Both the position numbers and the translations under genes were made by a program. A DNA stretch of 26,636 nucleotides from Selaginella moellendorffii. Its lineage: Eukaryota > Plantae > Lycopodiophyta. Where the stretch lies: the NCBI RefSeq assembly GCF_000143415.4, contig NW_003314414.1, forward strand, positions 57,482 through 84,117, written 5' to 3'. Below, one piece after another: positions 7,340-26,636 of this stretch (position 1 is its first letter; each line of letters starts with the position of its first letter). The notes beneath the pieces are model-generated. The model did not search any database, was not told the DNA's origin, and worked only from the letters and a program-made list of their open reading frames with translations.

Positions 7340-7370
7340 CTCTAGTCGGACTTTTGTAGTCCGACTTTGT
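7340..7370 (+). repeat. Double target motif (variant ctctagtcggacttttgt plus tagtccgactttgt)
   Basis: Seen directly between the 5' end of C and the 3' end of A2. Confidence 0.9.
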
Positions 7371-7450: not shown

Positions 7451-10400
7451 TTATCTAGAGGAGCCTACAATGGAAGTACCTACAGAAAGGGGGGTTGCTC
7501 GTGAACTGGCGCCCGAAGGTCTTCCTAGATGTGTCACCTGGAACCATTCGTCTGGCGGTGTCCACATCCATTCCCGAGTACCTGCCTCCCCTTGCTTCCA
7601 CAAGAAATGCCAGATCTGCGCTTCTTTTTTTGCTTTTTCTGGGCCATTTCTCCCTCCTCTTTTTTCCAGTTGTAGGACACGGGCTGCTGCTGCAGTTATC
7701 ATTCTAGTCCACACCCGTGACGCCACCACCCTTGGTCCTTCTTCCCTATCATTAAAGATTCTGTTGCACCGGGCTTTCCATACTTCCCACATTGTAATTC
7801 CTCGCAGTAGGTCCACTATCTCTGTTGGGATTCCTTCTATGTCTGTTCGAGTTGTGTTAAGCTGGTCAAACCGCGGTGCCCCTTCTTCTCTTGATGTCCA
7901 TTTCCAAGAGTCTGTTCCATTTCGCATTCCTGCGGCAGCTTCGCCCCATACTGCCGCTCCATACGTGAGGCACACTTGTCTCTGGGAGTGTTGTTGCAGC
8001 AACCAGCACGTGCTTCTCCACACGTCTTGTGCGCTTTCACATTCCCATAATATGTGCCTTTGTGTCTCCCTCGCTCCACATTTGTCGCATGTTTGGTCCA
8101 CGAGGTGTATGTTCCTTTTTGATGGTAGCCTGTCTTGCATTGTCAACCACATGAAGTATCTTGTTTTTGCTGCCCAACGTCCTTTCCATAACTCTTTCAA
8201 TATCTCCTGCTGTGTCTTGTCCTGTATGTTGGCTCGTTTCATCCTTGATACCAGTAGTGAGTCACTGCGCGGCCGAATGAGCTTTCTCCCCAATCTTGTT
8301 TCGTAGGCAAAGAATTCTTCCTTTTTCCTTCCCCGCCAATTCCATTCCGTTGGATCCCAGGCCAGCTCGCTTAATTTTTGTTGTCTGAACCAGTACATCC
8401 TAGCTACCTGGCCTTCCGTTATCTTCGGGTCCATTGATGCTGTTTTCTTATCTATCCGTATAACACGTATCGGCTCTGTTCGTGACATGTCCGGTCGTAG
8501 GCTCTCCTTGGGCACTTTGTATGGTAATAGTCTCCCAGCCACCCCGACTTCGAACACATAACATTTCGTCTGGTCTTGAGTTGCCGTGTATATCACCTTT
8601 TCCTCGGCTATCCACCAGGCTGGTGTCGTTTCTCTGACTTCCTTAATGCTCTGTTTGCATTTCCCTTGTGCTTCTTCAAAGGCTGTTTCGAACTTTTTCA
8701 GCCTGTGTGCCGAGATTTCCAGCCCATAGAAAACCTTTAGTCTATCTCTGTTCATTTCTGTTTCCCCCGCTTTTATCATTGAGTCAGCTTCTGCAAATGT
8801 TCTCATCCCAGCACTGTGAAGGTCCCGGCATACTTTGTCTATTCCTTTGTCCGCAGTTTCCCCCAAACATTTCCCCTTATATTGAAATAGCTTATTAAGA
8901 AATATTGGTTGTCGATCCAACTCATAAGTGTTTGTCGGTTTTCTTTTTTCCAACTTGCTCTTGAATTCCTTCCACAATCTGAACAGTTTCCCAGAGAATG
9001 TATTTGGTTTTGGCATTTTCAGTGCGCCTTCCATGAACAGCCACCTTTCATCTTTTTCCCAGTTTTGCCTCGTGTGTTCTAGTCTGTCCGGAATGACTTT
9101 AAGCAGTTGATGGCGTAGTAGGAGTTTCCATGGTTGGTTTCCGGGCATGTTCATTCGGTGAAAGATTTTGAATAGCAGCGCCTTGCATTGTTCCTCTATA
9201 TCTATAATGTTTATCCCCCCATCCTGTTTTGCTCTTGTGACCGAGCTCCATCCAACCTTTGCCCCTCCTCTTGATACTGTTGCTTGGCCCTTCCATACAT
9301 ATGTCCTGATGAGCTTGTTCATTTCTTTTAGTGTTTTCTTGTCCAAGTTCCATGATGCCGCCAGGAACCAGATTGCTCCTAGCACTATATTATTCGCCAC
9401 TACACATCTTGCCGAGAAGGACAGCTTCCGTGATGCCCAAAATTTCAGTTGATCTCGAAGCTTTTCGACCGCCTTCTGATTCTGCGGGAGGGGGTCGTAT
9501 GCCCGGCCTATTTGGAACCCCAAGTATCTTGTTGTTTCTCCTTGTTTCAGCCACTTAAAATCCCACTCTCTCCCCCAATTTGGCGGGTCAGAGCTTGGCA
9601 GCCATATTCCCACCGATTTTCCCCAGTTTATTCGTGAGCCAGCTGCCAGGTTGAAGAAGTCCAAGTCCTTCTTGACCTTGCTCATGTTTTCCGGGGAGCC
9701 TGTCGTGATGATTCCTGTGTCATCCGCGAAGGCACTGGATTTCAACTGCCTTTCCTCTGTCCCTGCCAGGTCTTGTAGTGAGTCTCTGCACCCAGGCAAT
9801 ACCAGCCCTTCCGGTCCGTCCATCCTTGCCAGATAATGTGCTAAAGCATCGGCCACGAACAGGAACAAAAACGGGGCTAATGGACACCCTTGTCTTACTG
9901 ACCGTTGGAGCTTGATCGTGTTCCCTACTGTCCCGTTTATTGTGACCTTGCTTGATGCGCCTTGGTATAAGGTGGCCGTCCATCCTATAAACTCTTCAAG
10001 GATGCCGATCTTCCTCATTGTCGTTTGCAGGAATTCCCAGTCTACTCTATCATATGCCTTCTCGTAATCCAGGAGTATTATGGCCATCTCTAATCCTTGG
10101 TCTTTGACTTGTTCTTGTGTGAGCAACACTGTCAATATGTTGTCTACCAGTTGTCTTCCTTCCACAAACCCATTCTGGGTGTCATGTATCGTTTCTGGCA
10201 ATAACGGCCTTAATCTCTTGGCTAGCGCCTTGGCTACTATCTTGTATAGTGTATTTAGCATCGATATCGGTCTCCAGTTCTTGAGTAGAGATGCATCCCC
10301 TCCTTTTTTGGGAATGAGCGCAATTATTCCATCTATGGCTCCTGGGGGCCATTGTCCCGTTCTCATCACCTCCTTCCATGTGTCCAACACTACTGGCCCC

Positions 10401-11884
10401 AACCATTCCCAGTTTGCTTTATAATATGCTGGTGGCATCCCATCTTCCCCCGGCATCTTGTCATCGTTCAAGTCTCTAACTGCATCCTCTAGCTCTTCCA
10501 GTGTAAAGTTTCTGCACAGGGTCCGTGCTAAGGCTTCATCTACTTTCTGGGGCACCGACTGAAGAACTTCCTCCATGGCCGTTTTCCTTTCTTCTGTCCA
10601 CGGTTCTGCTCTAAACAGTCCTTGGTAGTATGTCTCAGCCATCCTGTGCATCTCCTGTAGGCTCGTATGCATCTCACCTTGATCATCCTTGAGCCCGAAC
10701 ATTGGCGGGGACGTAACTCTTGCTTTTATGGACTTGTAAAACTCTTTGTTTAGCGCATTCTCACTAATATGCCATTTGAGGTGCCCCGACCTTATAAACG
10801 CCTCCATTTTTTCCGCTTCCAGGGTGAAAAGTTGGGCTTTGGTTCTTGCTAGCTGAGTTCTCAGTGACGTATCCAGCGGGTCCAACCTGATCAATCTCTT
10901 AATGGCTTCAATATTTCTTCTTATTGCTTGCACTTTTTTGAAAACTTTTCTTCGCTTGTTCTGTGTCTTTTTCCGGATTTCATTGGCTATCTCAATTGTG
11001 AACTTGTGCAGATCTCCTCCTTCTTGCTGATTCCATCTTTCTTTTATATGGTCATTCATTTTCCCGTCCTCAAAGTTTTTCCGCGATATTGGTGCAGGCC
11101 TCTTTGTTCCCCACCTCTTTAAGATGGGAAGCGTCAAAGCCACCGAATTATGATCTGAGAAGTCTCTGTATCCCGTTGTTATATCTAATTTTCCACTATT
11201 CCGACACAGTTCGGGTGATATATAAAACCGGTCCAGTCTTCGTTGAATTCCCCGTTGTTGGTGCTCTTGCCATGTGAACCTTGGCTCGTGTTGTACAAAC
11301 CCTGGGATGTTGTATGTATCTTCTAGCCCCATCGCTAGCACTAGTTGTGCCCACATTGCTCTTTCCCTGCTTGTCCTTTTGTCTCTCATTTCTCCCCCAT
11401 CTTTGTCTAGCTCCTCTTCCACAAAGTTGAAGTCTCCCGTGACCATCCATGTTGAGGGTTGTGGAGGTATTCGGTGTACCAATTCATTCCAGAAATCTGC
11501 TCTTTCAGAGGAGCTTCCTGCTGGTGCATACACATTCAGGAGGCCTACTAGCATGTCTCCTATCTTGAACTGGACACACTGTGCTCTACCTGGTACCAGT
11601 ATTGCATGATCTTCAACCAAAGATTCCCACGTGCCTTTTACCACTATTAATGTGCCTCCACTGCATGATACTGCCGGATTCCAAAAATATTTCCCTTTCG
11701 TAAACTTATAAACTTGATCCATTCTTGAGAGCCTATGCTCTTGCACACACAAGAAATCAAAACATTGCGTCACACCTTCTACCTGTCTAAGATACTGTCT
11801 AAATTTCGTCTTTTTGTTATTCAGTGCTGATCTCTCCTTCTTCAGGCCTCCCACGTTCCACGTTCTCACGTTGATGTTAACCAT
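7451..11884 (-). CDS. ORF2: APE endonuclease + reverse transcriptase + C-terminal CCHC zinc finger (family A)
   Basis: EN motifs TWNV, QEH, NVYAP, GDFNF, FTW..RLDRFY and SDH. RT motifs KMPGEDG, NWRPISMLNTLYKIVAK, DYEKAYDRVDW, RQGCPLAP, AFADD and RYLG. Finger CDKCGARETQRHILWEC. The first ATG is at 11884 (the ORF track starts at an upstream TTG, 11908). Confidence 0.97.
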   Translation of the reverse strand: MVNINVRTWNVGGLKKERSALNNKKTKFRQYLRQVEGVTQCFDFLCVQEHRLSRMDQVYKFTKGKYFWNPAVSCSGGTLIVVKGTWESLVEDHAILVPGRAQCVQFKIGDMLVGLLNVYAPAGSSSERADFWNELVHRIPPQPSTWMVTGDFNFVEEELDKDGGEMRDKRTSRERAMWAQLVLAMGLEDTYNIPGFVQHEPRFTWQEHQQRGIQRRLDRFYISPELCRNSGKLDITTGYRDFSDHNSVALTLPILKRWGTKRPAPISRKNFEDGKMNDHIKERWNQQEGGDLHKFTIEIANEIRKKTQNKRRKVFKKVQAIRRNIEAIKRLIRLDPLDTSLRTQLARTKAQLFTLEAEKMEAFIRSGHLKWHISENALNKEFYKSIKARVTSPPMFGLKDDQGEMHTSLQEMHRMAETYYQGLFRAEPWTEERKTAMEEVLQSVPQKVDEALARTLCRNFTLEELEDAVRDLNDDKMPGEDGMPPAYYKANWEWLGPVVLDTWKEVMRTGQWPPGAIDGIIALIPKKGGDASLLKNWRPISMLNTLYKIVAKALAKRLRPLLPETIHDTQNGFVEGRQLVDNILTVLLTQEQVKDQGLEMAIILLDYEKAYDRVDWEFLQTTMRKIGILEEFIGWTATLYQGASSKVTINGTVGNTIKLQRSVRQGCPLAPFLFLFVADALAHYLARMDGPEGLVLPGCRDSLQDLAGTEERQLKSSAFADDTGIITTGSPENMSKVKKDLDFFNLAAGSRINWGKSVGIWLPSSDPPNWGREWDFKWLKQGETTRYLGFQIGRAYDPLPQNQKAVEKLRDQLKFWASRKLSFSARCVVANNIVLGAIWFLAASWNLDKKTLKEMNKLIRTYVWKGQATVSRGGAKVGWSSVTRAKQDGGINIIDIEEQCKALLFKIFHRMNMPGNQPWKLLLRHQLLKVIPDRLEHTRQNWEKDERWLFMEGALKMPKPNTFSGKLFRLWKEFKSKLEKRKPTNTYELDRQPIFLNKLFQYKGKCLGETADKGIDKVCRDLHSAGMRTFAEADSMIKAGETEMNRDRLKVFYGLEISAHRLKKFETAFEEAQGKCKQSIKEVRETTPAWWIAEEKVIYTATQDQTKCYVFEVGVAGRLLPYKVPKESLRPDMSRTEPIRVIRIDKKTASMDPKITEGQVARMYWFRQQKLSELAWDPTEWNWRGRKKEEFFAYETRLGRKLIRPRSDSLLVSRMKRANIQDKTQQEILKELWKGRWAAKTRYFMWLTMQDRLPSKRNIHLVDQTCDKCGARETQRHILWECESAQDVWRSTCWLLQQHSQRQVCLTYGAAVWGEAAAGMRNGTDSWKWTSREEGAPRFDQLNTTRTDIEGIPTEIVDLLRGITMWEVWKARCNRIFNDREEGPRVVASRVWTRMITAAAARVLQLEKRGGRNGPEKAKKEAQIWHFLWKQGEAGTREWMWTPPDEWFQVTHLGRPSGASSRATPLSVGTSIVGSSR

Positions 11885-14800
11885 TTCTGAATCCTCGGGT
11901 GCTGCCAAGACGCTGTCTCTCCACCCAATGGTATGGTCCCATTGGTCGAAGTGGCCATGCGAACGGGATTCTCACCGTTCCTCGGAACCTGAACGAGTTC
12001 GGCGCTTGTTCCACGAAATTATCTTCTCGAATCGAAAACCTCTGCGGGTTCCAGTTGAAGTTGTAGGCCAGAATATCCTCCAGAGTCCGGCCTATGTCTT
12101 GTCCAGGCGAGATCAGAATTGCCGGTGGGGCGTATCCAACTCTGTTGTCGATCCATTCCCCCAGGAACTTGGGAGGGTTCGTTCCACTGACGTATAGCTC
12201 AATTTTGCAAACTGCTCTTCTCGGGGGGGTGAATCCTGGCGGACAGTTTCCTCTTGCAAAGTCCTCCGTTCTGCCTGATCTTGAGCGTGACTGTTGTTGT
12301 TGTTCCACTGGCCCCGGTACCCTCTGTGTAGCCTGCTGTGGTGGCATTTCACCTTTATCTTGGACCATCTCTACTTCTGTGTCAGGTTCCTTTGCCTCCC
12401 CCACGGCTTGTCCTTCGAACCGTCTTCCTGTCGGCCTCCATTCTTTCCCTCGCGAAGCCCCCGACTGTGCTTTTTCCTGCTTGGCTGCTGTTGATTGCTC
12501 CCCTTGTCCCTCCTCCTTCTGTCCTTTGGTTCGAGGCTTCTTGCTTTCGCCACTGGAGGCTGCTTTCTCTGTTGTTTCCCTTTCCCCTCTGGCTCCACGT
12601 TTCGTGCCTTCCGATCCACTGTTTGCTTTCTGTCGGTCCTCTCCTGTTTCCTGCATTCCCCCCACACTTGCTCCTCTGGCCAAACAGTGTTTTCCAATGT
12701 GTCCCGTGTGCCGGCAAATAATGCATACACTCAGGTTTGGTAGCAGCATAACCCGAATCCTTCTTGGCCCTTGCCCCTTCCCTGGCTTGAGTTCTATCTC
12801 GAAGGGGATGTGAACTTCTTTCGGAATCCTGACTTTGACCGTGACTCTGTCTCCCACTGGCATTCCTTCCATCCTTATGAACGTAGCAAACTGCCTCAGT
12901 ATTGTCGCCAGGATCTTGTCTTCGGCCAGTGCCACGTCCATACCTTGTAGCTCAAAGTTCACAATCACAGATGGGGGGAGTAACATCCTTTTTTTCTGGG
13001 GCGTGAAATTGTTGTGATATGATCTGAAGAAGAGCTGAAAGTCTAACTGTGCGTACGCATCCACTCGCAGCAACTTGTGCCGAGCTCTCTCGTCCTTGAT
13101 GACCACATTATAGCACTTTTCTCCCAGGTCCTTCACATCTTCTGCTAAAACCGTGACCAACATGTCGTGATATGCCAGCACTGCGCATACCCAGTCTGAT
13201 ACTACAAAACCTGCCGGGACTGCTCCTTCCACTATTACATGTATGGTTTCCTCCGCTCTTCTAGCTTGCAACTTGTTTAACTCCTCCATGAATTCTTCCT
13301 GGTCTACTTCCAGGACATCGTTTGCCGGCCCGAATGGCATTCTCGTAGGCTTCCTTGGTGGCATTATCTCCTCGATCTTTACTGGAGGTGGCCCAAATGG
13401 GGCTATGGGAGCATCCGGACATACTGACATTTTCGAATACTGTGGTAAAACCTTCGGGTATCCCATTTCCGGCTCTCGCTTCCCTTCCGGGGATATCACC
13501 ACCTCCGGCACGAGCTCCTCCCATATCCCTCTTGATGACGATGCTTCCCACTGTCTTTCCTCATCCAACTTCCCTTTTCCCTTGTCCTCCCTCATTCTGT
13601 CATGAAGTTCTTGTCCCAACAGAGCTTCGTATGTTCGCGCCGCCTGTCCCATTCCGTCCGATCTCTCCTGTCTGGCTTCCTTTTCTTGCCTTTCCTTTAT
13701 GGCCTTCTCCTTTTCCCTTTCAGCTTCTTCTTCCAGTAGCCTTTTTGCTGCCTCTTCTGCCAAGCGTCTAGCTTCTTGCTCTTTTCGCGCATTGGCTTCC
13801 CTGATTGCCTTGAAGCAGGGGGGGCCCTTCTCCAGCGGGCAGCACGTCTTGATTCTTCGCTTAATCCCGGTCGGGGATCCTACCGCCGCTTCCTTCCCAC
13901 TGGCTTCCTTTTCTGCCCTTGCCCCTGCGTTTTCCTCCCCGACTCCTGGCGATTCGTTGGTGGGGTTTCTTCTAGGCGCTCTCGTGAGTGGGGTTTCCTC
14001 TTCCTCACTTGCATCCTCTTTTCCTTTGTTTTCCACATTGGCTGGCGAGACTTCTCCTACCAGCGTTTCTTCTGGATCTAGTACCTCTGGGAGCTGCACA
14101 CCCCTGGCTCTCCCTCCTGCAGTGCTCATCCTCGCCGTTGTCCTTGCTCGTGGCATTTTTCCCCCAGTGTCTTCCTCTCTTTTTTTTCCCTCTGATTCTA
14201 GCGTTCCTTTCTTTCCCTCCCTCTCCTTTTCCCCCTTTTCCCACCCTTCCGTTCCCTCCCCTTCTTCCACTTCCCACTTTCCTTTCGGAGATTTTTCCCC
14301 CTTGCCTTTCCTTTCCCTTTCGCTTACCGCTTTGCTTTTGTCTTCACGCTGGCCCTCGTCTTTTACCGAAAACAATGCCCTCCGGATTGACAAGTCCCCT
14401 TTAAATAGTGCTGACCCTGGCTGCCACATGTCATTCCGCCATTTGCTGCCCGCTCCTCCACGTTTTTCTTCCCCCTTTCCTGTCCACGTTGATAGCGCAC
14501 ACGATTGCTTTCTTGGATTCTTCGGCTTCTCCTCGGACATGACCCTGCCACGCGTCTCTTCCTTGGATTTTCTGCATGGATTTTCGCCCCATGCATCTCC
14601 ACGTGTCGCCTTGTCCTTCATCCCCTCCTTTCCGACCGTGACCTGCTCGGTCTCTTTAATTCCCACTGGCTGCGTGGTGATGACGTTGTTACTGTCCTCG
14701 TTTTTCTCCCGATTTGCTACGATCTTGACAGTTATTCCGCCTTTCCCCCATATTAACTCCTCCCTTGGTTTCCCCGCACCCGCATTCATTCGCCGTCTAG

Positions 14801-14936
14801 CCGTTGTCTCGGGATTCCGGCCGCTCCCAATTCCCCCCATCTTGGTCCGCCGCGTGTCCACCATCTCCTCCGTCCCTTCTTCTCCTCTCGGTCGCATCCT
14901 AGCCGTCCAGAGCAGCGGCTTTTTGCCTTTGAACAT
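11877..14936 (-). CDS. ORF1 (1019 aa): low-complexity/coiled-coil N-half, RRM/DUF4283-like middle, CCHC knuckle, conserved C-terminal domain
   Basis: Long ORF directly upstream of ORF2, with an E/K/R/A-rich helical stretch and CIICRHTGHIGKHC (C-x2-C-x4-H-x4-C). The middle and C-terminal blocks align with family B ORF1. The RRM call is an inference from position and pattern. Confidence 0.88.
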   Translation of the reverse strand: MFKGKKPLLWTARMRPRGEEGTEEMVDTRRTKMGGIGSGRNPETTARRRMNAGAGKPREELIWGKGGITVKIVANREKNEDSNNVITTQPVGIKETEQVTVGKEGMKDKATRGDAWGENPCRKSKEETRGRVMSEEKPKNPRKQSCALSTWTGKGEEKRGGAGSKWRNDMWQPGSALFKGDLSIRRALFSVKDEGQREDKSKAVSERERKGKGEKSPKGKWEVEEGEGTEGWEKGEKEREGKKGTLESEGKKREEDTGGKMPRARTTARMSTAGGRARGVQLPEVLDPEETLVGEVSPANVENKGKEDASEEEETPLTRAPRRNPTNESPGVGEENAGARAEKEASGKEAAVGSPTGIKRRIKTCCPLEKGPPCFKAIREANARKEQEARRLAEEAAKRLLEEEAEREKEKAIKERQEKEARQERSDGMGQAARTYEALLGQELHDRMREDKGKGKLDEERQWEASSSRGIWEELVPEVVISPEGKREPEMGYPKVLPQYSKMSVCPDAPIAPFGPPPVKIEEIMPPRKPTRMPFGPANDVLEVDQEEFMEELNKLQARRAEETIHVIVEGAVPAGFVVSDWVCAVLAYHDMLVTVLAEDVKDLGEKCYNVVIKDERARHKLLRVDAYAQLDFQLFFRSYHNNFTPQKKRMLLPPSVIVNFELQGMDVALAEDKILATILRQFATFIRMEGMPVGDRVTVKVRIPKEVHIPFEIELKPGKGQGPRRIRVMLLPNLSVCIICRHTGHIGKHCLARGASVGGMQETGEDRQKANSGSEGTKRGARGERETTEKAASSGESKKPRTKGQKEEGQGEQSTAAKQEKAQSGASRGKEWRPTGRRFEGQAVGEAKEPDTEVEMVQDKGEMPPQQATQRVPGPVEQQQQSRSRSGRTEDFARGNCPPGFTPPRRAVCKIELYVSGTNPPKFLGEWIDNRVGYAPPAILISPGQDIGRTLEDILAYNFNWNPQRFSIREDNFVEQAPNSFRFRGTVRIPFAWPLRPMGPYHWVERQRLGSTRGFRNG

Positions 14937-15899
14937 CGTGATCTTTGCTTCAAGCTTTGCACTTCCTTTCTTGGGCGTTGCTCTGGCCAGCGAGCTTGGT
15001 TTTCCAACTCAAGTGGAGCTTCCCTCTTGCCCAGTTACTTCTGCTCAAGATCTCGGTTGCTTAGAGCTTTTGAACTTCCAGACACAAGTTCCAAGTCCAA
15101 ACTGATTTCAGTCGGCTAGCCCAGTTTTGCTGTGCCCAGAATCCCCCCGACTAGTACTCCAGATCATTGCCTTATTGCGACCGTTCCTCTTATCCTCCCA
15201 GCGCGCGCTCTTTCTTTTTCAGTGCATGCAGTGGAGAGTGCTTGGGGGGTTTTTGAGACTTTTCACTTAGCTTCTTATAGCCCGGCGATCTTACTCCTCT
15301 CTGGCCTGTTCCCCCGAGGACCGAAAGGACTCTCTTACAAGCCAATACTGTCAGCCGAGGGGGGGCCAGAAAGGATGTCGTTCGGAGCCATTCCAAAACT
15401 TGAGTTACGAGCCAAAAAATGCACGACGGTGGTGATTCAGTGGGATGCTTTTGATTCTTTTTTCTTTTTTCTAGCGCTTTGCGGCTGGAGGAGAGGCTTC
15501 GCTTCCAGCTTTGATCTTTAGCCTTTGTCTGGTGACCTCTTAGCTGAAAAAAAACCGGCCCACCGACTTGAAATCAGCTTGGACCACACTGCGAGCTCTA
15601 TCCACCCAGTCTCTTGCTGTAACTTGCGCGAGTTGCTCACACCCAGCGAAGAACCAAACTCACTGCCCAGCCACACTCAGAGCCATCGTGCTTCTGCCTG
15701 GAGCTTCCAGATCTATTCTACCAGCCAATGCAAAAAACCCTCTCGAATCTGGCTGCAGCCGAGAAGACCCAACAGCGCGTCTCACTGCCGTCCAGCGCCA
15801 GCGCCACACTCAAGCGTCCACTCCACTCTCAGCCTGTGGCTGCGCTTCTCTCTTCTTGCCTTAGCGCCTTCCCTCTCCTCTCCGCCTTCACTCGTCATT

Positions 15900-15960
15900 C
15901 TCTAGTCCGACTCTTCTTCTCTCTAGTCCGACTTTGTGAAAAATTCTAGTCCGACTTTGT
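15900..15960 (+). repeat. Triple target motif (15900-15912 partial; 15921-15941 CTCTAGTCCGACTTTGTGAAA; 15945-15960)
   Basis: Seen directly between the 5' end of A2 and the 3' end of B. Confidence 0.93.
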
Positions 15961-16047
15961 CAATGGGGTTTTAATTAGTTTATCCTCTACAAACCATAGA
16001 GTCCGATTTCGACATGCTCGAAACCGGAAAAGAGCTCTTCAAGATTT
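15961..16047 (-). promoter_or_regulatory. Structured 3' UTR of family B
   Basis: Element-sense GCUCUUUU-CCGGUUUCGA-GCAUG-UCGAAAUCGG (10 bp with one G-U pair), then CUCUA-U-GGUUU-G-UAGAG...AAACC. Confidence 0.68.
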
Positions 16048-19000
16048 TTAGGGGGGGTGGGACGAGGGGGACAAAGTAGAACTGGTACTCGAGCCCGTGA
16101 TGTCTGATGTCCAAGCTACCAAAGTTCCTGGTGTGGAACTCTGTCGACTCGGGGAGGTACACGTGCCTTCGTTCCTGAACATGTGCTGCCAAATCCATAT
16201 TGGTGGCTTCCACGTCCATTCTTCTTCTCCAGCCTCGCTTCTTCCTCTAAAAAACGGCCACAGCTTCTTCTCCTTCACTATCTTCCCTTCCTCGCCTCGT
16301 TTGATCAGCGTGTCCAGGCGAGCTGCGAGTGAGACGATCAGTCTGGACCAAACCTTTGAGATAGTTGCTCGAGCCGAGGGGTTCATGTCCTCGAACAGCC
16401 TGGCGCAGCGAGCCTTCCATATCTCTGCTAGTGTGCATCCCCGAAGCGCATCGAAGAGCTCCTGGTGGAGATGCGTAATGTGTGTCCGAGTTTGGTTGAG
16501 TTGATCAAAGTGTGGGGCCTCGTTGTGTCTCCACTTCCATGCATCAGGATTCTTTGTTTTTCCCTGGATGAAGCTACCCCAGAGCGCTGATTCGTATGTG
16601 ATTGCAGCTCCTCCGGTTGACGTTCGTTTAAGTACCGCTGCTGCACCTTCCCATACTTCCTGTGCTGCCGGACATTCCCATAAGATGTGTCGCTGTGTTT
16701 CTGTGGCGCCACAGGTCTTGCAGGCTGTGTTCGGAAGATGAATGGCAACCAGAGAGGGAAGACGTTCTTGCTGGGCCAGCCACATGAAGTATCGGTTCTT
16801 AGCTGACCAGCGCCCCTTCCAGATCTTGTTGATGCAGTGTGAGTGGTTCCTGGAACTGATCTGTTGGGCCTTTGCTTTCCGGATGAGGGAGGATCGAGTC
16901 GGCACCCTGATCAGTTTGCGGCCTAGCTTGGTCTCATACTGGAAGAAGTCCTTGCACGTGGTTCCCTTCCAATGCCACTCTGCAGGATCCCACTTGAGTT
17001 CATCCAGGGTTTGTTGGCGGAACCAGTAGAGGCGAGCATATTGGTTTTCTGGTACCGATGGATCAACGTTGGCAGCTTTTTTCTCCATTTGAATCACTCT
17101 GATCGGTTTAGCTCTGCTCATGTCGGGGAGGTCCTTGTACTCGGGGGTAATGATGGGGTACAAGCGTCCAGCCTGTCCTGCCTCAAATACTAGTCCCGAT
17201 GCCATGTTGGGGAGGGTGCATACGATCGATTCATCCACCTTCCACCAACGATGGTGCTGATCTTCTTGCAGGTTTAGTTGTTCGAGGCATGCGTGTTTGG
17301 CTGCTAAAAAGGCTGTCTGGAATTTACGCATCCTGTGTTCCGAGATGATTAATCCATAGAAAGCTCTGATTCGGTCGCGGTTGTGGGCCGTCTGGTTGGG
17401 CTGGATCATGGTGTCTGCCTCTGCAAAGGTTCTCATCCCTGCTCTGTGCAGGTCTCTGCATGTCTGGTCCAGGCCGCGATCCTCTGAAGCTCCGAGCGTT
17501 TTACCCTGGACAGCGAAGAGTTTGCTCAGGAAAATTGGCTGCCGGTCCAGTTGTTCTTTGGTACGAGGTGGTTTACGTTCCAGCTTGCACTTGAATTGCC
17601 TCCAGAGCTTGAACAGCTTTCCTGAGAATGTGTGAGCCTTTGTCATTTTGAGTTTGGTATCTGAAAAGAGCCATTGTTCGTCTGACGCCCAGTTTTGTCT
17701 GGTGTGCTCGTTCCTGTTCGGGAGGACTTTCAAAAATTGTGCTCGCAGCAGTATTCTCCATAGTTGGTGGCCAGGCATGAGCATCCTTGTGAAAATCTTG
17801 AAGAGAAGAGCCTTGCATTGTTCTTCGATGTCAATGATATTGAGGCCCCCTTCGTGCTTCGGAAGTGTTACTGACCGCCAGTTGACCTTTGCTCCACCAC
17901 GCGACACGCAGGAGGAGCCTTTCCAGACATAGGTACGAATGAGTTGGTTCATTTCCTGGATCGTTCGCCTGTCCATGTTCCAGCATGCTGCCAGGAACCA
18001 GATTGCTCCAAGCAGGATGCTGTTAGCCACCACGCAGCGTGCTGAGAACGATAGTTTTCTGCTCGCCCAGAACTTGAGTTGATCCCTTAGTTTTGTTACA
18101 GCTTTTTGGTTCTGGGGTTCTGGATCATATTGGCGTCCCACTTGAAATCCAAGGTAGCGGGTGGTCTCCTCCGTGTCCAGCCATTTGAAACCCAGCGCCG
18201 TGCCCCATGTTGGAGGTCTGCCGGGGGGGAGCCATAGTCCTACCGATTTGTGCCAGTTTATTTTCGATCCCATGGCCTCATTGAAAAAATCCAGATCACT
18301 TTTGACGTTTGAGAGGTTCTCCGGTGATCCCTCCACGATCAGGCTTGTGTCATCTGCAAAGGCTGAGGATAGGAGGTCCTCCTTTGAGGCTTCGTTCATG
18401 TCCTGAAGCGTGGCACCACAGCCTGGAAGGGGCATACCTTTTGGACCATGTGGTCGGGCGAGGTAGTAGGCCAGAGCATCCGCAACAAACAGGAACAGGT
18501 ATGGTGCGAGGGGGCATCCTTGGCGGACTGATCTTTCAAGTTTGAAGGACTGTCCCATGGTTCCATTGATTGTAACCCTGCTCAATGCCGAGTGGTACAG
18601 GGATGCTGTCCATTCCACGAACTGCAGAGGAACTCCTTGCTTGATCATTATGGCCTGGAGAACTTTCCAATCCACCCGGTCGTAAGCTTTTTCAAAGTCC
18701 AGGAGAATGATTGCAATCTGCTCTATCGTGTCTTTGGTGTGTTCTTGCGCCAGCAGCACTGTTAGGAGATTGTCCACGATTTGTCTGCCGTCTACGAAAC
18801 CGTTCTGCGTCTCCTTGATTGTTTCTGGGAGCAGAGGCTTGAGGCGTGAGGCCAAGGCTTTTGCTACGATCTTGTACATGGTGTTCAGCATAGAGATGGG
18901 CCTCCAGTTCTTGAGGTGGGACATATCTCCTTTTTTTGGTATCAGAGCAATGATCCCATCCGTAGCTCCTTCCGGCCACTTCCCAGCTCGCATGGTTTCT

Positions 19001-20508
19001 TGCCACATCTTGAGAACTTCTGGTTCGATCCAGTCCCAGTTTTGTTTGTAAAAGGCTGGTGGCATGCCGTCCTCCGCTGGCATCTTGTCGTCCTTGAGGT
19101 CATCCAGGGCGTCCTTTAATTCTCGCAGCGTGAAAGGTCTCATTACTCCGGTGTTCATTGCTGGGGTGTACTTGGTCGGGATATGTTCCAGCACTCTTTC
19201 AAGTTTCTCTTGCCTGACCTCATCCCATGGTTCCTCCTTGAAAAGCTGCGAGTAGTAGTGTTCTGCCATGTTGTGCATGTCATCGATCTCTGTGTGCAGT
19301 TGCCCTTGTTCGTCCTTCAATCCGAACATTGGTGGGGAGATCACTTTAGATCTTATGGATCGATAGAACTCCCTGTTTAGCGCGAGTTCACTTGCGTGCC
19401 ATCTAATGTGTCCTGCTTTTAGGAAGGCTTCCATCTTGTCGGCCTCTATCCTTTCCTGTTGGCGCTTAACCTGGATTTTTTGAGCTTGTAGCCAGGGGTC
19501 GTCCGGGTTGCTGCGAAGGTCAGTGTTGATCGAGGCCAGGACACTCCGAACCTTTTGGACTGTGTTAAAGACACCTCTCCTATCTTTCCGGATCTTGGTT
19601 CGAGCCTTTTGAGCGATTTGAAGGGTGAAGGAGTGTAGGTTCCCCTTGTGTTTCTCCCATTGCTCGTGTGCCCAGTTATTGTTGGCTTGCTCCTCAAAGA
19701 ACTTCTTGGGTATGGCAACTGGCTTCCTTGGACCTCTCGATCTTCGAAAGGGAAGTGTGAGTCTAATTGGATGGTGGTCCGAGAAGTCCGTGTAGGTGTT
19801 GTCGATGTCCAACTTCCCCCCTTGCATGCACAGGTCCATGGTGAGGTAGAAGCGGTCCAGACGACGTTGTATGCCTCTGCGTTGACGTTCTCGCCATGTG
19901 AAACGTGGTTCGTGTGTCACAAACCCCGGGATCTCGTAAGCGTCGCAGGTGCCAATTTGTAAGAGGAATGAGTTCCATGCAAGGCGTTCCGCACGTGTAC
20001 GTCTATCCTGGATTATGCCTCCCTGTTTGTCCTCCTCGTGATCCACGAAATTGAAGTCTCCAGCCAGGATCCAGTCATCGATTCCAGAGGGAAGACGATG
20101 CTGCAGAACTCGGAAGAAGTGTGCTCGTGAGGTGGAGCGGGAAGCCGGGGCGTAGATGTTCAACAGGCCTATGGTTCGGGCATTTACTTTTAACACTATC
20201 ATGTGAGCACGTCCAGGGATTAGGATCTGGTGCGAGGTGCTGAGGGATTGCCATGGTCCTTTGGCGATGATGAGGGTTCCTCCTCGCCTTCCAACTGCAG
20301 GGTTCCAGAAGTGTTCGCCTTGTGAAAACTTAAAGATTGTCTGGTGTTCTTGCATTCTATGCTCCTGGAAACAGAAAAAGTCACACTTTCCTATCACTCC
20401 TTCTAACTGGCGAAGGTATTGTCGTAGCCTCGCCTTCTTGTCATTCCATAGCACTCCGTCTTTACTAATGCCTCCTACATTCCATGACAGCACACTGAGA
20501 TCAGTCAT
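16048..20508 (-). CDS. ORF2: APE endonuclease + reverse transcriptase + CCHC zinc finger (family B, 1486 aa)
   Basis: Motifs SWNV, QEH, NIYAP, GDFNF, RLDRFY, SDH; NWRPISMLN, DFEKAYDRVDW, RQGCPLAP, AFADD, RYLG; CKTCGATETQRHILWEC. Confidence 0.97.
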   Translation of the reverse strand: MTDLSVLSWNVGGISKDGVLWNDKKARLRQYLRQLEGVIGKCDFFCFQEHRMQEHQTIFKFSQGEHFWNPAVGRRGGTLIIAKGPWQSLSTSHQILIPGRAHMIVLKVNARTIGLLNIYAPASRSTSRAHFFRVLQHRLPSGIDDWILAGDFNFVDHEEDKQGGIIQDRRTRAERLAWNSFLLQIGTCDAYEIPGFVTHEPRFTWRERQRRGIQRRLDRFYLTMDLCMQGGKLDIDNTYTDFSDHHPIRLTLPFRRSRGPRKPVAIPKKFFEEQANNNWAHEQWEKHKGNLHSFTLQIAQKARTKIRKDRRGVFNTVQKVRSVLASINTDLRSNPDDPWLQAQKIQVKRQQERIEADKMEAFLKAGHIRWHASELALNREFYRSIRSKVISPPMFGLKDEQGQLHTEIDDMHNMAEHYYSQLFKEEPWDEVRQEKLERVLEHIPTKYTPAMNTGVMRPFTLRELKDALDDLKDDKMPAEDGMPPAFYKQNWDWIEPEVLKMWQETMRAGKWPEGATDGIIALIPKKGDMSHLKNWRPISMLNTMYKIVAKALASRLKPLLPETIKETQNGFVDGRQIVDNLLTVLLAQEHTKDTIEQIAIILLDFEKAYDRVDWKVLQAIMIKQGVPLQFVEWTASLYHSALSRVTINGTMGQSFKLERSVRQGCPLAPYLFLFVADALAYYLARPHGPKGMPLPGCGATLQDMNEASKEDLLSSAFADDTSLIVEGSPENLSNVKSDLDFFNEAMGSKINWHKSVGLWLPPGRPPTWGTALGFKWLDTEETTRYLGFQVGRQYDPEPQNQKAVTKLRDQLKFWASRKLSFSARCVVANSILLGAIWFLAACWNMDRRTIQEMNQLIRTYVWKGSSCVSRGGAKVNWRSVTLPKHEGGLNIIDIEEQCKALLFKIFTRMLMPGHQLWRILLRAQFLKVLPNRNEHTRQNWASDEQWLFSDTKLKMTKAHTFSGKLFKLWRQFKCKLERKPPRTKEQLDRQPIFLSKLFAVQGKTLGASEDRGLDQTCRDLHRAGMRTFAEADTMIQPNQTAHNRDRIRAFYGLIISEHRMRKFQTAFLAAKHACLEQLNLQEDQHHRWWKVDESIVCTLPNMASGLVFEAGQAGRLYPIITPEYKDLPDMSRAKPIRVIQMEKKAANVDPSVPENQYARLYWFRQQTLDELKWDPAEWHWKGTTCKDFFQYETKLGRKLIRVPTRSSLIRKAKAQQISSRNHSHCINKIWKGRWSAKNRYFMWLAQQERLPSLVAIHLPNTACKTCGATETQRHILWECPAAQEVWEGAAAVLKRTSTGGAAITYESALWGSFIQGKTKNPDAWKWRHNEAPHFDQLNQTRTHITHLHQELFDALRGCTLAEIWKARCARLFEDMNPSARATISKVWSRLIVSLAARLDTLIKRGEEGKIVKEKKLWPFFRGRSEAGEEEWTWKPPIWIWQHMFRNEGTCTSPSRQSSTPGTLVAWTSDITGSSTSSTLSPSSHPP

Positions 20509-23500
20509 TGGCCTTGTTTGTAGTGATCCGATCGCGTTCCACCCATGAGAATTCGCGATCTCTCCCTTCTCTCGCGGGGATGACGCCGCTTTTGGTGAGA
20601 AGGGCTGCGTGCAGCTCCATGTTGGTGCCCACGATTGTGGCCTTGTCTACTTCCACATGGTACCTAAGATCCTTGATTACCTCGGACGCTTCCAGAAAGC
20701 TGTGTACTCCATTCTCTGGGAGCTGATCACGCGCCATGTGGAATGTGGGGGTGACATATCCGACCGGAGGGCCACTCCAGAGTGCTAGGTACTTCCGGGG
20801 ACGTGTGTTGCTTACATGGAGCCACAGGTTGACTTTGAGTCGCGTGAACCGTCGGGAGGAGGACGCTCGCCCTCGCGGCACCTGGTCCTCTGATGGGGAT
20901 CTCTCCACTCGTGCTCTTTCCGGGGACGGGGAGCGTTGGACTGTGTGTTGTCCACCCCGCTGGTCGCTTGTCCTCTCAGGTGAAGCTTGTCCGTCCGTCG
21001 GTGTTTCTTCCCTGCGCATTGACACTCTGTCGGACTGTCTCCTAGCTGTTCCTCCTTGAGCCGAAGGGCTTCTCCTTCTTTTTCCCCGGTCCTGCATCGG
21101 CTTAGAGGGTGTCGCTGCTGCTGGGGGTGTCGTCCTAGATTCCTGGATATGGATCGGGTGCACTTTCCCCATGATCCGGATCTTATTCGGGATTGGCGCC
21201 TTTCCAGTGTACAGAACGTGGATGAGTTGGTCCCCTGACTCCTCCCTTGTCGCCCGTTTCCCTAGGTACTGAGCGAAGCCCTCCACCATCATTGCCAGGA
21301 ACACCGGGGTGTTGTCTGTCTCGCACAGGTCCTCGACGAGTAGATCCAGCTCCATTGTTGGGCGGTGAACCAAGTCCTTCTGGCTCGGGGAGAATCCTGG
21401 CGGAAACTTGTAGAAGAACAACTCGTGTGTTGGTCTCGTCACCCTCTGCTTTAGGACCAGGGCTCGCCGGTTTTTCTCCGTGCTCACCTCCACGCTGTAG
21501 CAGTTCCGGCCAAGGAACGTGACTGGTCTCCCCCGGAACGACACTCCTGCCTCTTTGAAACCATCCTCGAGCCCTTCCAGTGCTGCTTGCCGGGCTGGTT
21601 TGTTCCCTTCAAAGATTGCCAGGATCAAGTTCTTGGCTGCCTTGGCTTGACGTTCCTGCAGTTCCATGAGGACCTCGTTCGCCTCCACTTGTAGCTCTCC
21701 TGGGACTGGTGCCGTGACATCCGACATTGCCGGTGCAGCAGCTGAGTGGGGTGAAACGGTCTTCTTCACGTCCATGTCCAACTCTTCCACCCTTGTCCAT
21801 CCGAGATAGAGTACGTCCGACTCCTTCCTCTTCTTGAGCGGGACGGCTGGAATTGCTTTCTCCTTGGTGGTCCCGGTCGAAGCTCTCGGAGCTGGTGTTT
21901 CTGGGACCTTTGTGAGCGCTGGGGAGGTCTCTTCGATCTGATCCCCCTCCGAGTCCCCCTCTTTCCCCTGTCTCTCCTCTGTCACCGCTTGGATGACTCA
22001 TTCCCTCTGCTGTGTGTCCATGAAAAGCGCGCTCAAACCCGGCGAGGCAGAGTGTGAGTCAGGCAGGGTCTGTTGTGGCGTGTTCTCCAGCATTTCGTCC
22101 GCATACTTGCCAATTCCCTCCAAAGCTGATATCGATGGGATCCTTTCAACTGTGAGCGTCCTGGCCGGTGGTGTTGCGTTCAGCGGGGGGGTGATTGTTT
22201 GCTTGGAGGATGAGGCGTCTGAAGCTCCCTTTGGTTTTTTGCCCCCCGTTGCGGTCTGGTTCTTCTTCTTTGTGATCTTGACTGTATCGGCGGATGAGGA
22301 GGGAGCAGCTCGAGTCAGTTCTGGTTCTGGTTCCACAGCTTCGTTGTCCTTCGGGGGCGGCGGTGGGCGCTGCTTGAGCTTGATCGAGAGTCTCGTCCCC
22401 GTGCTTCTCGTTTCTGGTCGAGGCTCCGCCGTAGGTCTCTCCTCATTGTCAGGGGTGTTCTGAGTCGTGTCTGTGCGAGGGGGCTCTTCCAGTTCGTCTT
22501 CCAGTGGTGGACCTCGCTTTCGCATGTTCTTTGTACGCGGCATTTCCTTCTTTGTTCCGGTCCTGTGTTCAGTAAAGAGTTCACGGATCAACGCTACTCC
22601 ACGAGGGTGCTGTGGTGATTCTGCTGAGGTACTGCTGGCAGTTTTTTGAGTCGAAGAGGGGGGTGTATGGGGGGAGGCGTGTGGGGGGTCAAGCCTTGGG
22701 GAAGAAAGGGGAGAGAGATCGACGTGTGATCGCGAGGGTGGAGCGGAGACAAATCGGGGAGCTAGGGGATTGGAAGGAGAACCGACCTCTTGGTTGTTGG
22801 CGTGATGGTCCTCTCCTTTTCTCTTTGCTCTGCTTGCTTTCTTCCGCTCTCCAGTCGCTCTCGAGTTCGATTGAACTTTTCCGAGCAGGGGCAAGTTTAG
22901 GGTTGTTGCTACTGCTCTTGGCGGGGGAGCACGTGGATGCGTGTGATTGGGCGTGCTCCGTCTTAAGTTCGCCTTGGATTTTGGTGATATAACGTGATCT
23001 TGGCGATTCTCCCGCCGTACGTTGTGTTGGTTCGAGGACTGCCCTCTTGATGATTGTCGGGGTGATGGCGACGTGGGGGGGGGAATGTTCCCTGGTGGCA
23101 CGTGGGGGATGGTGACATCATTTTTCTTTTCCTTCGTCGTCTCTCCCTTCTGTTCTGGACCGTGTGATCTTGTCTCAGTTGATCTTAGCCGTGGCTGGGA
23201 CTTGTGCGTGGGGAGGGCCACCGATCCATTGGTTGGGGTTTGCTTCTCGCGATTCAATGGTTGTGATGCTGATCGGCCCGGTACGTGTACGGTCGTCCTT
23301 GTGCGTGGTTTTTTGGTGTTGGTCGCTGTCTGCTCCGGGCCGTTGGATCTTTTTTCGGACGATCCTGACTGTGCTTGGGACTTAGCCATTTCCTGCATGG
23401 GCTTCGTCTGAGCGGGAAGAAATTTTTGATCGGGCAGATCATGGATTCTTGGGGAGGGATGCTCCCGGCCGGGTGAAAAACGATCTGGAGGTGGAACAAT

Positions 23501-23587
23501 TAATCGAAGTCCATACCTGTGTGCCCCTTGCCTTGACGTCTTTTGCAGTTCTGAGGTCCAGGGGAGGACCACGTTTTGCCGGTTCAT
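20501..23587 (-). pseudogene. Family B ORF1 (~1028 codons) split by one in-frame TGA at 21998-22000
   Basis: ORFs 21998-23587 and 20501-21985 are in the same frame: ...CAG AGG GAA TGA GTC ATC CAA GCG GTG ACA.... The combined length matches family A ORF1 and the C-half aligns with it. Confidence 0.8.
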
Positions 23588-24378
23588 GGGTGCTGGAGAG
23601 GACGATCTTTGTGGGTCATTGAGAGCTGTCCCAAGTGCTGCTGGGTATCAATCCAAGTCCATCAGACTGTCCGTGTTCGTCCTTTGCTGCTGCGCCCGCG
23701 AAGTGACCTTCTAGTGTCCTCGTGTTCTAAGGACCAGAACTTGGAGCGATTGGCACTTGTTTTGCTTCTCGGGTGCTTCTGTCCCTTTCCAGTGCTCCAG
23801 GCGTCCCTTCCTCCAGTCAGGCGTGGCCCCCTTCTTGCTTTTGAATTTTTTTTTTTTTTTTTTTCTTGGGGAAAGGGGGGGGGGGGGAGCGGGACTTCTG
23901 CCACTGATCGGTCCGCTGTTGAGTCCTCTTTTTGATCAACCAGGAGGGGCCAAAGAAGATTGTGGACCGTGAAGCCAGCAATCCTATTGCGACTGGTGAT
24001 CCTGGAGCGATCTCTTCACTACCCAAATGGATCCGCGTGGACCTTCTGTTGGGTGGAGCGAGCTTGAACCAGGGGATTCTTGGCGGTGTCAGTCAGCAGC
24101 ACTGTGGGGGGATTAGAACAATGGGGAAGAGATCGGGATCGTTGCAAGGGAAGCGCCTGACCGGCGGGGAGCCGTGGAGAACCGGGACCCTTGCACAACC
24201 AGTACCGAGATCGACAAGTGGGTTCCGCACACTCTAGAGTTCGGCCGTGAACCAAGGCGCCTAGTAGCAGATCCATGGCGAGCAGCTGGGGAGCGAACCA
24301 GGATGCCGTGGGAAGTGGGGGGGATGAGAGCGCCGGAACTTTGAGGAGCGCCTTGCACCTAGGGTTTCCATCCTCTCT

Positions 24379-24395
24379 CTCTAGTCCGACTTTGT
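24379..24395 (+). repeat. Target site / TSD motif CTCTAGTCCGACTTTGT
   Basis: Lies between the 5' end of B and the 3' end of A3. Confidence 0.93.
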
Positions 24396-26636
24396 TAAAC
24401 AGGGCCTTTTATTTTCCAGCAAAAAACCAAAAAACTGGGCATGGTTTCGTTGGGCACAAAACCAGCAAAGAGCCTTTATCTAGAGGAGCCTACAATGGAA
24501 GTACCTACAGAAAGGGGGGTTGCTCGTGAACTGGCGCCCGAAGGTCTTCCTAGATGCGTCACCTGGAACCATTCGTCCGGCGGTGTCCACATCCATTCCC
24601 GAGTACCTGCCTCCCCTTGCTTCCACAAGAAATGCCAGATCTGCGCTTCTTTTTTTGCTTTTTCTGGGCCATTTCTCCCTCCTCTTTTTTCCAGTTGTAG
24701 GACACGGGCTGCTGCTGCAGTTATCATTCTAGTCCACACCCGTGACGCCACCACCCTTGGTCCTTCTTCCCTGTCATTAAAGATTCTGTTGCACCGGGCT
24801 TTCCATACTTCCCACATTGTAATTCCTCGCAGTAGGTCCACTATCTCTGTTGGGATTCCTTCTATGTCTGTTCGAGTTGTGTTAAGCTGGTCAAACCGCG
24901 GTGCCCCTTCTTCTCTTGATGTCCATTTCCAAGAGTCTGTTCCATTTCGCATTCCTGCGGCAGCTTCGCCCCATACTGCCGCTCCATACGTGAGGCACAC
25001 TTGTCTCTGGGAGTGTTGTTGCAGCAACCAGCACGTGCTTCTCCACACGTCTTGTGCGCTTTCACATTCCCATAATATGTGCCTTTGTGTCTCCCTCGCT
25101 CCACATTTGTCGCATGTTTGGTCCACGAGGTGTATGTTCCTTTTTGATGGTAGCCTGTCTTGCATTGTCAACCACATGAAGTATCTTGTTTTTGCTGCCC
25201 AACGTCCTTTCCATAACTCTTTCAATATCTCCTGCTGTGTCTTGTCCTGTATGTTGGCTCGTTTCATCCTTGATACCAGTAGTGAGTCACTGCGCGGCCG
25301 AATGAGCTTTCTCCCCAATCTTGTTTCGTAGGCAAAGAATTCTTCCTTTTTCCTTCCCCGCCAATTCCATTCCGTTGGATCCCAGGCCAGCTCGCTTAAT
25401 TTTTGTTGTCTGAACCAGTACATCCTAGCTACCTGGCCTTCCGTTATCTTCGGGTCCATTGATGCTGTTTTCTTATCTATCCGTATAACACGTATCGGCT
25501 CTGTTCGTGACATGTCCGGTCGTAGGCTCTCCTTGGGCACTTTGTATGGTAATAGTCTCCCAGCCACCCCGACTTCGAACACATAACATTTCGTCTGGTC
25601 TTGAGTTGCCGTGTATATCACCTTTTCCTCGGCTATCCACCAGGCTGGTGTCGTTTCTCTGACTTCCTTAATGCTCTGTTTGCATTTCCCTTGTGCTTCT
25701 TCAAAGGCTGTTTCGAACTTTTTCAGCCTGTGTGCCGAGATTTCCAGCCCATAGAAAACCTTTAGTCTATCTCTGTTCATTTCTGTTTCCCCCGCTTTTA
25801 TCATTGAGTCAGCTTCTGCAAATGTTCTCATCCCAGCACTGTGAAGGTCCCGGCATACTTTGTCTATTCCTCTGTCCGCAGTTTCCCCCAAACATTTCCC
25901 CTTATATTGAAATAGCTTATTAAGAAATATTGGTTGTCGATCCAACTCATAAGTGTTTGTCGGTTTTCTTTTTTCCAACTTGCTCTTGAATTCCTTCCAC
26001 AATCTGAACAGTTTCCCAGAGAATGTATTTGGTTTTGGCATTTTCAGTGTGCCTTCCATGAACAGCCACCTTTCATCTTTTTCCCAGTTTTGCCTCGTGT
26101 GTTCTAGTCTGTCCGGAATGACTTTAAGCAGTTGATGGCGTAGTAGGAGTTTCCATGGTTGGTTTCCGGGCATGTTCATTCGGTGAAAGATTTTGAATAG
26201 CAGCGCCTTGCATTGTTCCTCTATATCTATAATGTTTATCCCCCCATCCTGTTTTGCTCTTGTGACCGAGCTCCATCCAACCTTTGCCCCTCCTCTTGAT
26301 ACTGTTGCTTGGCCCTTCCATACATATGTCCTGATGAGCTTGTTCATTTCTTTTAGTGTTTTCTTGTCCAAGTTCCATGATGCTGCCAGGAACCAGATTG
26401 CTCCTAGCACTATATTATTCGCCACTACACATCTTGCCGAGAAGGACAGCTTCCGTGATGCCCAAAATTTCAGTTGATCTCGAAGCTTTTCGACCGCCTT
26501 CTGATTCTGCGGGAGGGGGTCGTATGCCCGGCCTATTTGGAACCCCAAGTATCTTGTTGTTTCTCCTTGTTTCAGCCACTTAAAATCCCACTCTCTCCCC
26601 CAATTTGGCGGGTCAGAACTTGGCAGCCATATTCCC
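24396..26636 (-). mobile_element. Family A copy 3 (3' portion, continues beyond the window)
   Basis: Near-identical to 7371-9611 (offset 17025), with the same precise 3' end. Confidence 0.96.
24476..26636 (-). CDS. ORF2 C-terminal part (end of RT region, CCHC finger), family A copy 3
   Basis: Translation nearly identical to the copy 2 C-terminus (differences include EGTLK vs EGALK and ADRG vs ADKG). Confidence 0.95.
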   Translation of the reverse strand, partial: GIWLPSSDPPNWGREWDFKWLKQGETTRYLGFQIGRAYDPLPQNQKAVEKLRDQLKFWASRKLSFSARCVVANNIVLGAIWFLAASWNLDKKTLKEMNKLIRTYVWKGQATVSRGGAKVGWSSVTRAKQDGGINIIDIEEQCKALLFKIFHRMNMPGNQPWKLLLRHQLLKVIPDRLEHTRQNWEKDERWLFMEGTLKMPKPNTFSGKLFRLWKEFKSKLEKRKPTNTYELDRQPIFLNKLFQYKGKCLGETADRGIDKVCRDLHSAGMRTFAEADSMIKAGETEMNRDRLKVFYGLEISAHRLKKFETAFEEAQGKCKQSIKEVRETTPAWWIAEEKVIYTATQDQTKCYVFEVGVAGRLLPYKVPKESLRPDMSRTEPIRVIRIDKKTASMDPKITEGQVARMYWFRQQKLSELAWDPTEWNWRGRKKEEFFAYETRLGRKLIRPRSDSLLVSRMKRANIQDKTQQEILKELWKGRWAAKTRYFMWLTMQDRLPSKRNIHLVDQTCDKCGARETQRHILWECESAQDVWRSTCWLLQQHSQRQVCLTYGAAVWGEAAAGMRNGTDSWKWTSREEGAPRFDQLNTTRTDIEGIPTEIVDLLRGITMWEVWKARCNRIFNDREEGPRVVASRVWTRMITAAAARVLQLEKRGGRNGPEKAKKEAQIWHFLWKQGEAGTREWMWTPPDEWFQVTHLGRPSGASSRATPLSVGTSIVGSSR

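Follow-up and report, generated by a model that had tools for sequence, protein, structure and literature searches.

In the literature that we searched, the LINEs that home to ribosomal RNA genes (R1, R2, R4-R9, RT and Mutsu) are confined to animals. R1, an APE-type element of the arthropod 28S gene, combines two overlapping ORFs and an APE endonuclease with a fixed insertion site and a precise 3' end that carries no poly(A); it makes a target duplication of 14 bp and forms tandem arrays with one duplication between the units, as well as copies outside the rDNA (PMC2718515). R2 occupies a fixed 28S site with a precise 3' end, recognizes the structure of its 3' UTR RNA and has persisted in rDNA for long periods; it possesses a single ORF with a C-terminal restriction-like endonuclease, inserts in the sense orientation and is co-transcribed. 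The Tx1 group (Tx1, Keno, Kibi, Koshi, Dewa and Mutsu) is described as target-specific and as part of the L1 clade (Kojima and Fujiwara 2004, cited in PMC3747384 and PMC4640811). Its members have an ORF2 of the L1 superclade, an APE endonuclease and a strict specificity for multicopy sequences, which in the case of Mutsu is the 5S rDNA. To our knowledge, Tx1-group members have been described from animals, and none has been reported in a 26S/28S gene.

For plants, PLE-X, an endonuclease-less Penelope-like element of Selaginella moellendorffii and S. tamariscina, is presented in its report as the first TE with targeted 28S insertion (Craig et al. 2021, PMC8557442). Stringent-type L1 LINEs of plants insert at dispersed positions; their 3' stem-loop is conserved, and they are accompanied by partner SINEs (Ohshima 2012/2013, PMC3472496, PMC3747384). 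A 2024 review of TEs in rDNA contains no LINE in a plant 26S gene (PMC10946416). One entry of its Table 1, 'Oryza sativa, R2, 28S', was considered as prior art and rejected, since the fish Oryzias was apparently meant.

Here, we analyze a window of 26,636 nt from S. moellendorffii (NW_003314414.1, 57,482-84,117; the window denotes this whole stretch of DNA) that, as judged from self-comparison and the list of ORFs, consists solely of minus-strand non-LTR elements arranged head-to-tail. With a probability of roughly four in five, we read it as an antisense array of two autonomous L1-type families (A and B) and a non-coding element (C) whose natural target site is a single position within the 26S rRNA gene, TTTGT/GAAA. 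Our search of the literature, conducted separately from Repbase, returned no rDNA-specific LINE from a plant, at this or at any other 26S site; this agrees with the first-pass annotation of the window, which knew of no described plant L1-type family at the site.

Families A and B resemble R1 in all of the features listed above, their inferred duplication being 15-17 nt long, and differ from it in their plant host, a site 89 nt downstream, the antisense orientation, streptophyte L1-like relatives and a C-terminal zf-RVT domain. They have in common with the Tx1 group the type of ORF2, the endonuclease and the strict specificity for a multicopy sequence. Likenesses to R2 are the fixed 28S site, the precise 3' end, a 3' UTR RNA structure that probably serves recognition and, as we count it, long persistence in rDNA; unlike A and B, R2 has the ORF structure, endonuclease, orientation and co-transcription given above and a site 163 nt upstream. 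PLE-X inhabits the same genus and the same gene, but is a retroelement of another class and lacks an endonuclease. The plant L1s studied by Ohshima share with A, B and C an L1-like plant lineage and a 3'-end RNA structure common to a non-autonomous partner, whereas A and B insert without poly(A) at a single target sequence. Neither the poly(A) tail nor the dispersed, loose TTTT/AA-like sites of a typical L1 are found in A and B, although TTTGT|GAAA, the putative context of the nick, remains similar to what L1 prefers.

Layout, coding capacity and relatives of the elements

The order of the elements and of the motif copies between them is given in Table 1.

Table 1. Elements, ORFs and target-motif copies in the window (positions counted from its first nucleotide)
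Feature	Position	Strand	Basis
A1, family A 5' portion (ORF2 N-terminal part, ORF1, 5' UTR)	1-5244	-	self-comparison
26S rDNA target motif, A1 5' end / C 3' end	5245-5258	+	motif scan
C, 2.1-kb non-coding element with A-like 3' end	5259-7339	-	self-comparison, ORF list
Degenerate motif copy (7340-7356), then exact motif (7357-7370); C 5' end / A2 3' end	7340-7370	+	
A2, full-length family A, 8.5 kb	7371-15901	-	ORFs intact, Pfam domains
A2 3' UTR	7371-7450	-	
A2 ORF2 (APE EN, RT, zf-RVT)	7451-11884	-	Pfam
A2 ORF1 (one CCHC knuckle)	11877-14936	-	
A2 5' UTR	up to ~15901	-	
Complex A2 5' junction	15902-15960	+	motif scan, junction sequence
B, full-length, second family	15961-24378	-	Pfam domains
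B ORF2	16048-20508	-	
B ORF1, one in-frame TGA at 21998-22000	20501-23587	-	
17-nt target motif CTCTAGTCCGACTTTGT, B 5' end / A3 3' end	24379-24395	+	
A3, family A 3' portion, cut by window end	24396-26636	-	self-comparison

Self-comparison, which bears out the boundaries of the elements, shows that A1 is 98.7-99.6% identical to 10628-15941 and that A3 is 99.6% identical to 7357-9611. Both ORFs of A2 are intact. A1 keeps both its ORF1 equivalent (1489-4266) and the N-terminal part of ORF2 (1-1281) open, but in a single frame, because an indel of ~43 nt near the end of ORF1 makes A1 shorter than A2 at this point (1346-1487 versus 11973-12157). The ORF2 of A3 continues without a stop across its visible part (24479-26635). 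The in-frame TGA of the B copy is CGA in three S. moellendorffii copies of this family, so that the copy in the window is disabled by a CpG C-to-T change in ORF1. Element C, the largest ORF of which does not exceed 116 aa, is over its first ~100 nt 83% identical to the 3' end of A (self-comparison) and is probably a non-autonomous element. It contains an internal tandem repeat (6494-7164) of two units of ~337 bp with 83% identity to each other. In run X13, which we guess to be an RNA sample and which stems from a third organism, contigs cover C at a word depth of 345-2278 and the flanking A at 0-9; C may be strongly transcribed.

The ORF2 proteins of A and B have ~1,485 residues, carry the Pfam domains Exo_endo_phos, RVT_1 and zf-RVT, and show alignable ExoIII-type motifs in the endonuclease (QEH, NVY, GDFN and SDH). 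With 57% identity in ORF2, the two families nevertheless share one nucleotide position of insertion. The ORF1 protein of A (1,019 residues) possesses one CCHC knuckle (CX2CX4HX4C) at residue 738, as do type I ORF1 proteins of the L1 clade; no Pfam domain was called in ORF1p, and the strict CCHC pattern had no match in the ORF1p of B. ORF1 and ORF2 overlap by 8 nt in either family, with the stop of the former and the ATG of the latter inside the overlap (11877-11884, ATGGTTAA; 20501-20508, ATGACTGA), an arrangement that points to reinitiation coupled to termination. At their 5' ends, C (7329-7339) and B (24360-24369; both minus strand) carry a telo-box-like AAACCCTA(G) within ~20 nt of the start, which may be a promoter element; it is absent from A. 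The top protein matches are gene models of S. moellendorffii with 83-88% identity, and an exact look-up of the A ORF2 in public assemblies returned no record.

The last ~90 nt of A, B and C constitute a common conserved block with a stem-loop. Over seven sequences, the stem is 98% paired, with one compensatory pair (UA-to-AU) besides several wobble changes. Coming from three lineages only, these sequences lend the stem-loop modest support; it would fit RNA recognition of the stringent type.

The first-pass annotation had taken the elements for an APE-type L1/Tx1 system, and their assignment to APE-type LINEs of the L1 type is borne out by their APE and RT domains, by human L1 ORF2p as the best solved structure (1e-41; R2 proteins match ORF2 only at ~1e-14), and by the L1-like relatives to which all full-length protein evidence leads. 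The closest matches are metagenomic LINEs (37-42% identity); the named RT relatives belong to Chara and Riccia, followed by L1-like proteins of angiosperms. In an RT tree without outgroup and without Tx1 or animal reference, A and B form one clade (support 100) that groups with two metagenomic clades (93), apart from the angiosperm L1s; given the composition of this tree, A and B may belong either to L1 proper or to the Tx1 group. Tx1 does not occur among the best 120 RT matches. A search of the PDB with the endonuclease only, a weak query, found no R1Bm, TRAS1 or L1 endonuclease at E up to 1, and a search of the protein atlas yielded generic LINE clusters only.

Among the outside relatives that we checked (L003 and L126-L129), only the one on L127, an ENA metagenome contig (ERZ25070695), is associated with rRNA genes, and its target is 5S. 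This LINE (L127:4150-10500), the RT of which is ~39% identical to that of A, is inserted in the sense orientation after ~position 8 of the 5S gene, with a 16-bp duplication (TCATACCGAGGCTACT) and without poly(A), and two copies of it are present within one 5S array. As to the other close relatives, L003 ends in poly(A), and L126, L128 and L129 have no rRNA gene nearby.

Identity and position of the junction motif

The 14-mer TAGTCCGACTTTGT is present on the plus strand of the window in five exact copies (5245-5258, 7357-7370, 15924-15937, 15947-15960 and 24382-24395), compared with a chance expectation of 0.11 (up to 2 mismatches allowed); none of 100 shuffles gave five copies. The five are distributed over four junctions, that between A2 and B containing two of them. 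Additional copies that are degenerate or partial stand at 7340-7356 (CTCTAGTCGGACTTTTG) and 15900-15912 (CTCTAGTCCGACT). The 3' ends of the elements abut TTTGT, those of A and C with TAAAC (5259, 7371 and 24396) and that of B with CAATG (15961). No element of the window possesses poly(A), and the ends GTTTA and CATTG (element sense) directly adjoin the motif. The six nucleotides that follow the putative nick point are GAAATG in the rDNA, TAAACG in A and C, and CAATGG in B, so that every junction retains TTTGT|NAA. The 5' junctions contain variable filler and partial motif copies. At the junction of A2 and B, the partial motif (15900-15912), the initial CT of which overlaps the last two bases of A2, is followed by filler, the 21-mer CTCTAGTCCGACTTTGTGAAA (15921-15941), the filler AATT, and a second motif (15946-15960) that adjoins the 3' end of B. 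The initial description of the junctions, with the motif at all four of them, the 21-mer at this place and each 3' end directly after TTTGT, is therefore accurate. It had also noted a longer extension of one motif copy; the GAAA in question is present (15938-15941), although it is weak evidence when taken alone. The octamer GAAAAATT (15938-15945) was rejected as proof of a right-hand rDNA flank, the match being limited to GAAA.

The motif is genuine 26S rDNA, and the elements are antisense to the rRNA. On the S. moellendorffii scaffold GL377659.1 (L001), the 3' end GTTTA of a family A copy (91% identity to A2) is followed by the motif, and this runs unbroken and in register into ~900 nt of antisense LSU rRNA. 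The eukaryotic LSU model of Rfam detects this piece with 528 bits (model positions 1891-2388) and 91 bits (1497-1884). The A copy and the rDNA piece of L001 are each interrupted by other transposons (L001:9940-10000 and 17680-18400), one of which has a gag-like ORF. A 25-mer from L001 that ends in the motif (GAGCTTGACTCTAGTCCGACTTTGT) was recovered from at least 120 metagenomic contigs, nearly all of which offer a conserved LSU context with GAAAGAAGACCCTGTT upstream of it. Since most of these contigs continue with GAAATGAC, and the plant-type GAAATGACTTGAGAGG follows in nine among the matches listed, the 25-mer is not restricted to plants. The claim that the motif derives from LSU rDNA is thus confirmed by the L001 junction and by the contigs. 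Its designation as plant-type applies to the nine contigs in which the plant-type GAAATGACTTGAG comes after the 25-mer, but not to the 25-mer itself, which is also found beyond plants.

When one plant-type contig is aligned to the Rfam LSU model, the insertion site is located at 2442|2443, between TTTGT and GAAA, and the motif at 2429-2442; the R2 site (TTAAGG|TAGCC) is located at 2279|2280 in the same alignment. With the R1 site 74 nt downstream of the R2 site (PMC2048585), the new site lies further downstream, at 163 nt from R2 and 89 nt from R1. The first estimate of 140-150 bp downstream of R2 was consequently too short, but the site does lie beyond R1 and is distinct from those of R1 and R2; the predicted insertion opposite to rRNA transcription is seen in the antisense LSU next to the L001 copy. 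Three of four metagenomic LSU contigs (L065, L113, L125 and L030) have non-rDNA directly next to GAGCTTGAC, at a point 25 nt upstream from the insertion site; the foreign sequence is probably that of introns or of other insertions. Contig L030 departs from the rDNA 5 nt past the site, at GAAAT.

Junctions across Selaginella loci and competing readings

Copies of A and B with 87-96% DNA identity are present on four S. moellendorffii scaffolds (L001, L002, L004 and L005), which together with the window provide twelve 3' junctions in five loci. The 3' position is constant: all twelve junctions lie after TTTGT, and all contain the 15-mer ACAAAGTCGGACTAG (element sense) or a variant that is 1-3 nt off, in a motif of 15-17 nt. 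What lies downstream of the motif varies, with at least 10 different partners that comprise true rDNA, full-length 5' ends of A, B and C, a 670-bp stub of A, truncated B and two further sequences. Copies of B are 5'-truncated at three points (window-equivalent 19439, 23174 and 23550), each flanked by the motif; 5' truncation combined with an intact 3' junction is a signature of target-primed reverse transcription. In a contig from a second organism, the 5' end of C is joined to B via the variant CTCTAGTCCAACTTTGT, and a C-C tandem is also present.

Beyond the 15-mer, 0-2 further nucleotides (AG) match the rDNA, which implies a duplication of 15-17 nt and a variable second-strand cut. This length, which includes the ~16-17 bp proposed in the first-pass annotation, is inferred from arrays rather than from a copy flanked by rDNA on both sides. 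A search of the window and of L001-L005 for the plant-type right flank GAAATGACTTGAG, in which up to 6 errors were allowed, gave no match beside any 5' end, so that the duplication is not seen in a bona fide rDNA unit here; likewise, no rDNA flank is found among the listed loose ends of short Logan contigs from four runs that were aligned to window positions 4800-8000.

At the gathering threshold, Rfam finds no rRNA in the window, and the array itself therefore lies outside recognizable rDNA; its rDNA content is limited to the motif of 15-21 nt. Rfam also finds no rDNA in L002, L004 and L005. Only one of the twelve junctions runs into rDNA, and this rDNA is broken by other transposons. A distribution of this type, with 11 of 12 junctions connecting element to element and four of five loci free of rDNA, would be expected if the 15-mer were the elements' own 3' tail, derived from an old capture of 26S sequence, and if their chief niche were self-nesting heterochromatic arrays in which the 15-mer perpetuates itself as a target; rDNA, which happens to contain this 15-mer too, would be hit only occasionally. 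A similar ambiguity exists for R2Hm-B, the 3' terminus of which perhaps includes 15 bp of 28S (PMC5035012). We consider this alternative unlikely, because the motif of L001 continues in perfect register into ~900 nt of LSU rRNA, and because A and B, only 57% identical, and C share the exact rDNA 15-17-mer, yet have 3' ends that differ (TAAAC versus CAATG). Moreover, counts of assembled loci are biased against rDNA copies, since rDNA arrays are usually missing from assemblies or collapsed in them. The alternative differs from insertion at a natural 26S target only in where most insertions land. Less probable still is the absence of ongoing site-specific transposition, with one or a few ancient insertions into an rDNA pseudogene being multiplied, motif included, by unequal crossing-over and segmental duplication: two identical B units in L004 with one same truncation point do look like a tandem duplication, and the A copies of the window are 98.7-99.6% identical, but the order of neighbors differs at nearly every junction, the motif flanks each of several distinct 5' truncation points, the variable 5' filler is of the type left by target-primed reverse transcription, both ORFs of A2 are intact, and the same junction is common to two diverged families and their non-coding partner.

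Proposed insertion route and its meaning

Under our preferred reading, in which A and B home to a single 26S position, the endonuclease would nick the rRNA-sense strand after TTTGT, and the freed 3' end would serve as the primer for reverse transcription, which would start at the very 3' terminus of an RNA without poly(A). The primer is probably helped into position by pairing with a copy of the motif that the RNA acquires by read-through. A cut of the second strand 15-17 nt upstream would then duplicate (CT)CTAGTCCGACTTTGT. The antisense position of the element relative to the rRNA would follow from this order of nicking and priming. Every insertion would regenerate the target, and since the 3' ends of the elements also keep TTTGT|NAA, new copies could land at existing junctions. 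Repeated landing of this kind would build arrays with a single motif between the units, and interior junctions could be targeted again as well. The pattern of the array matches that expected from repeated insertion into a regenerated target duplication, by analogy with the tandem copies of ancestral-type R1 in Drosophila, which have the 14-bp duplication between their units and are attributed to new copies entering the duplication that borders a resident R1 on its 5' side (PMC2718515). The common 3' UTR stem-loop probably allows the proteins of A and B to recognize both their own RNA and that of C, through which the non-coding C could be mobilized.

A bolder proposal, which we advance as tentative and rather doubtful, is that A and B belong to an old group of L1-like LINEs of the green lineage, of which they form the land-plant branch, and that this group homes to rRNA genes and can switch targets, with 26S in Selaginella and 5S in L127. 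As plant-type rDNA has an identical 25-bp 26S target, the intact A2 would then be a possible native plant rDNA-homing system, and PLE-X might use the A2 nick if the two sites coincide.

Taken together, our data support the view that A and B correspond, as L1-type elements of a plant, to the R elements of animals, with a new 26S site and an R1-like tandem array. The system combines this site with an antisense orientation, two long-diverged families and a non-coding partner. There is a practical aspect as well, since A2 is an intact copy and plant-type 26S rDNA shares the 25-nt target; animal R2 proteins are already being adapted for safe-harbour insertion into the rDNA of crops (PMC13580325). 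How sequence specificity is gained by an L1-type endonuclease and by the pairing between RNA and target could be studied in these elements, in which rDNA homing would have arisen independently, in plants, from within the L1 lineage.
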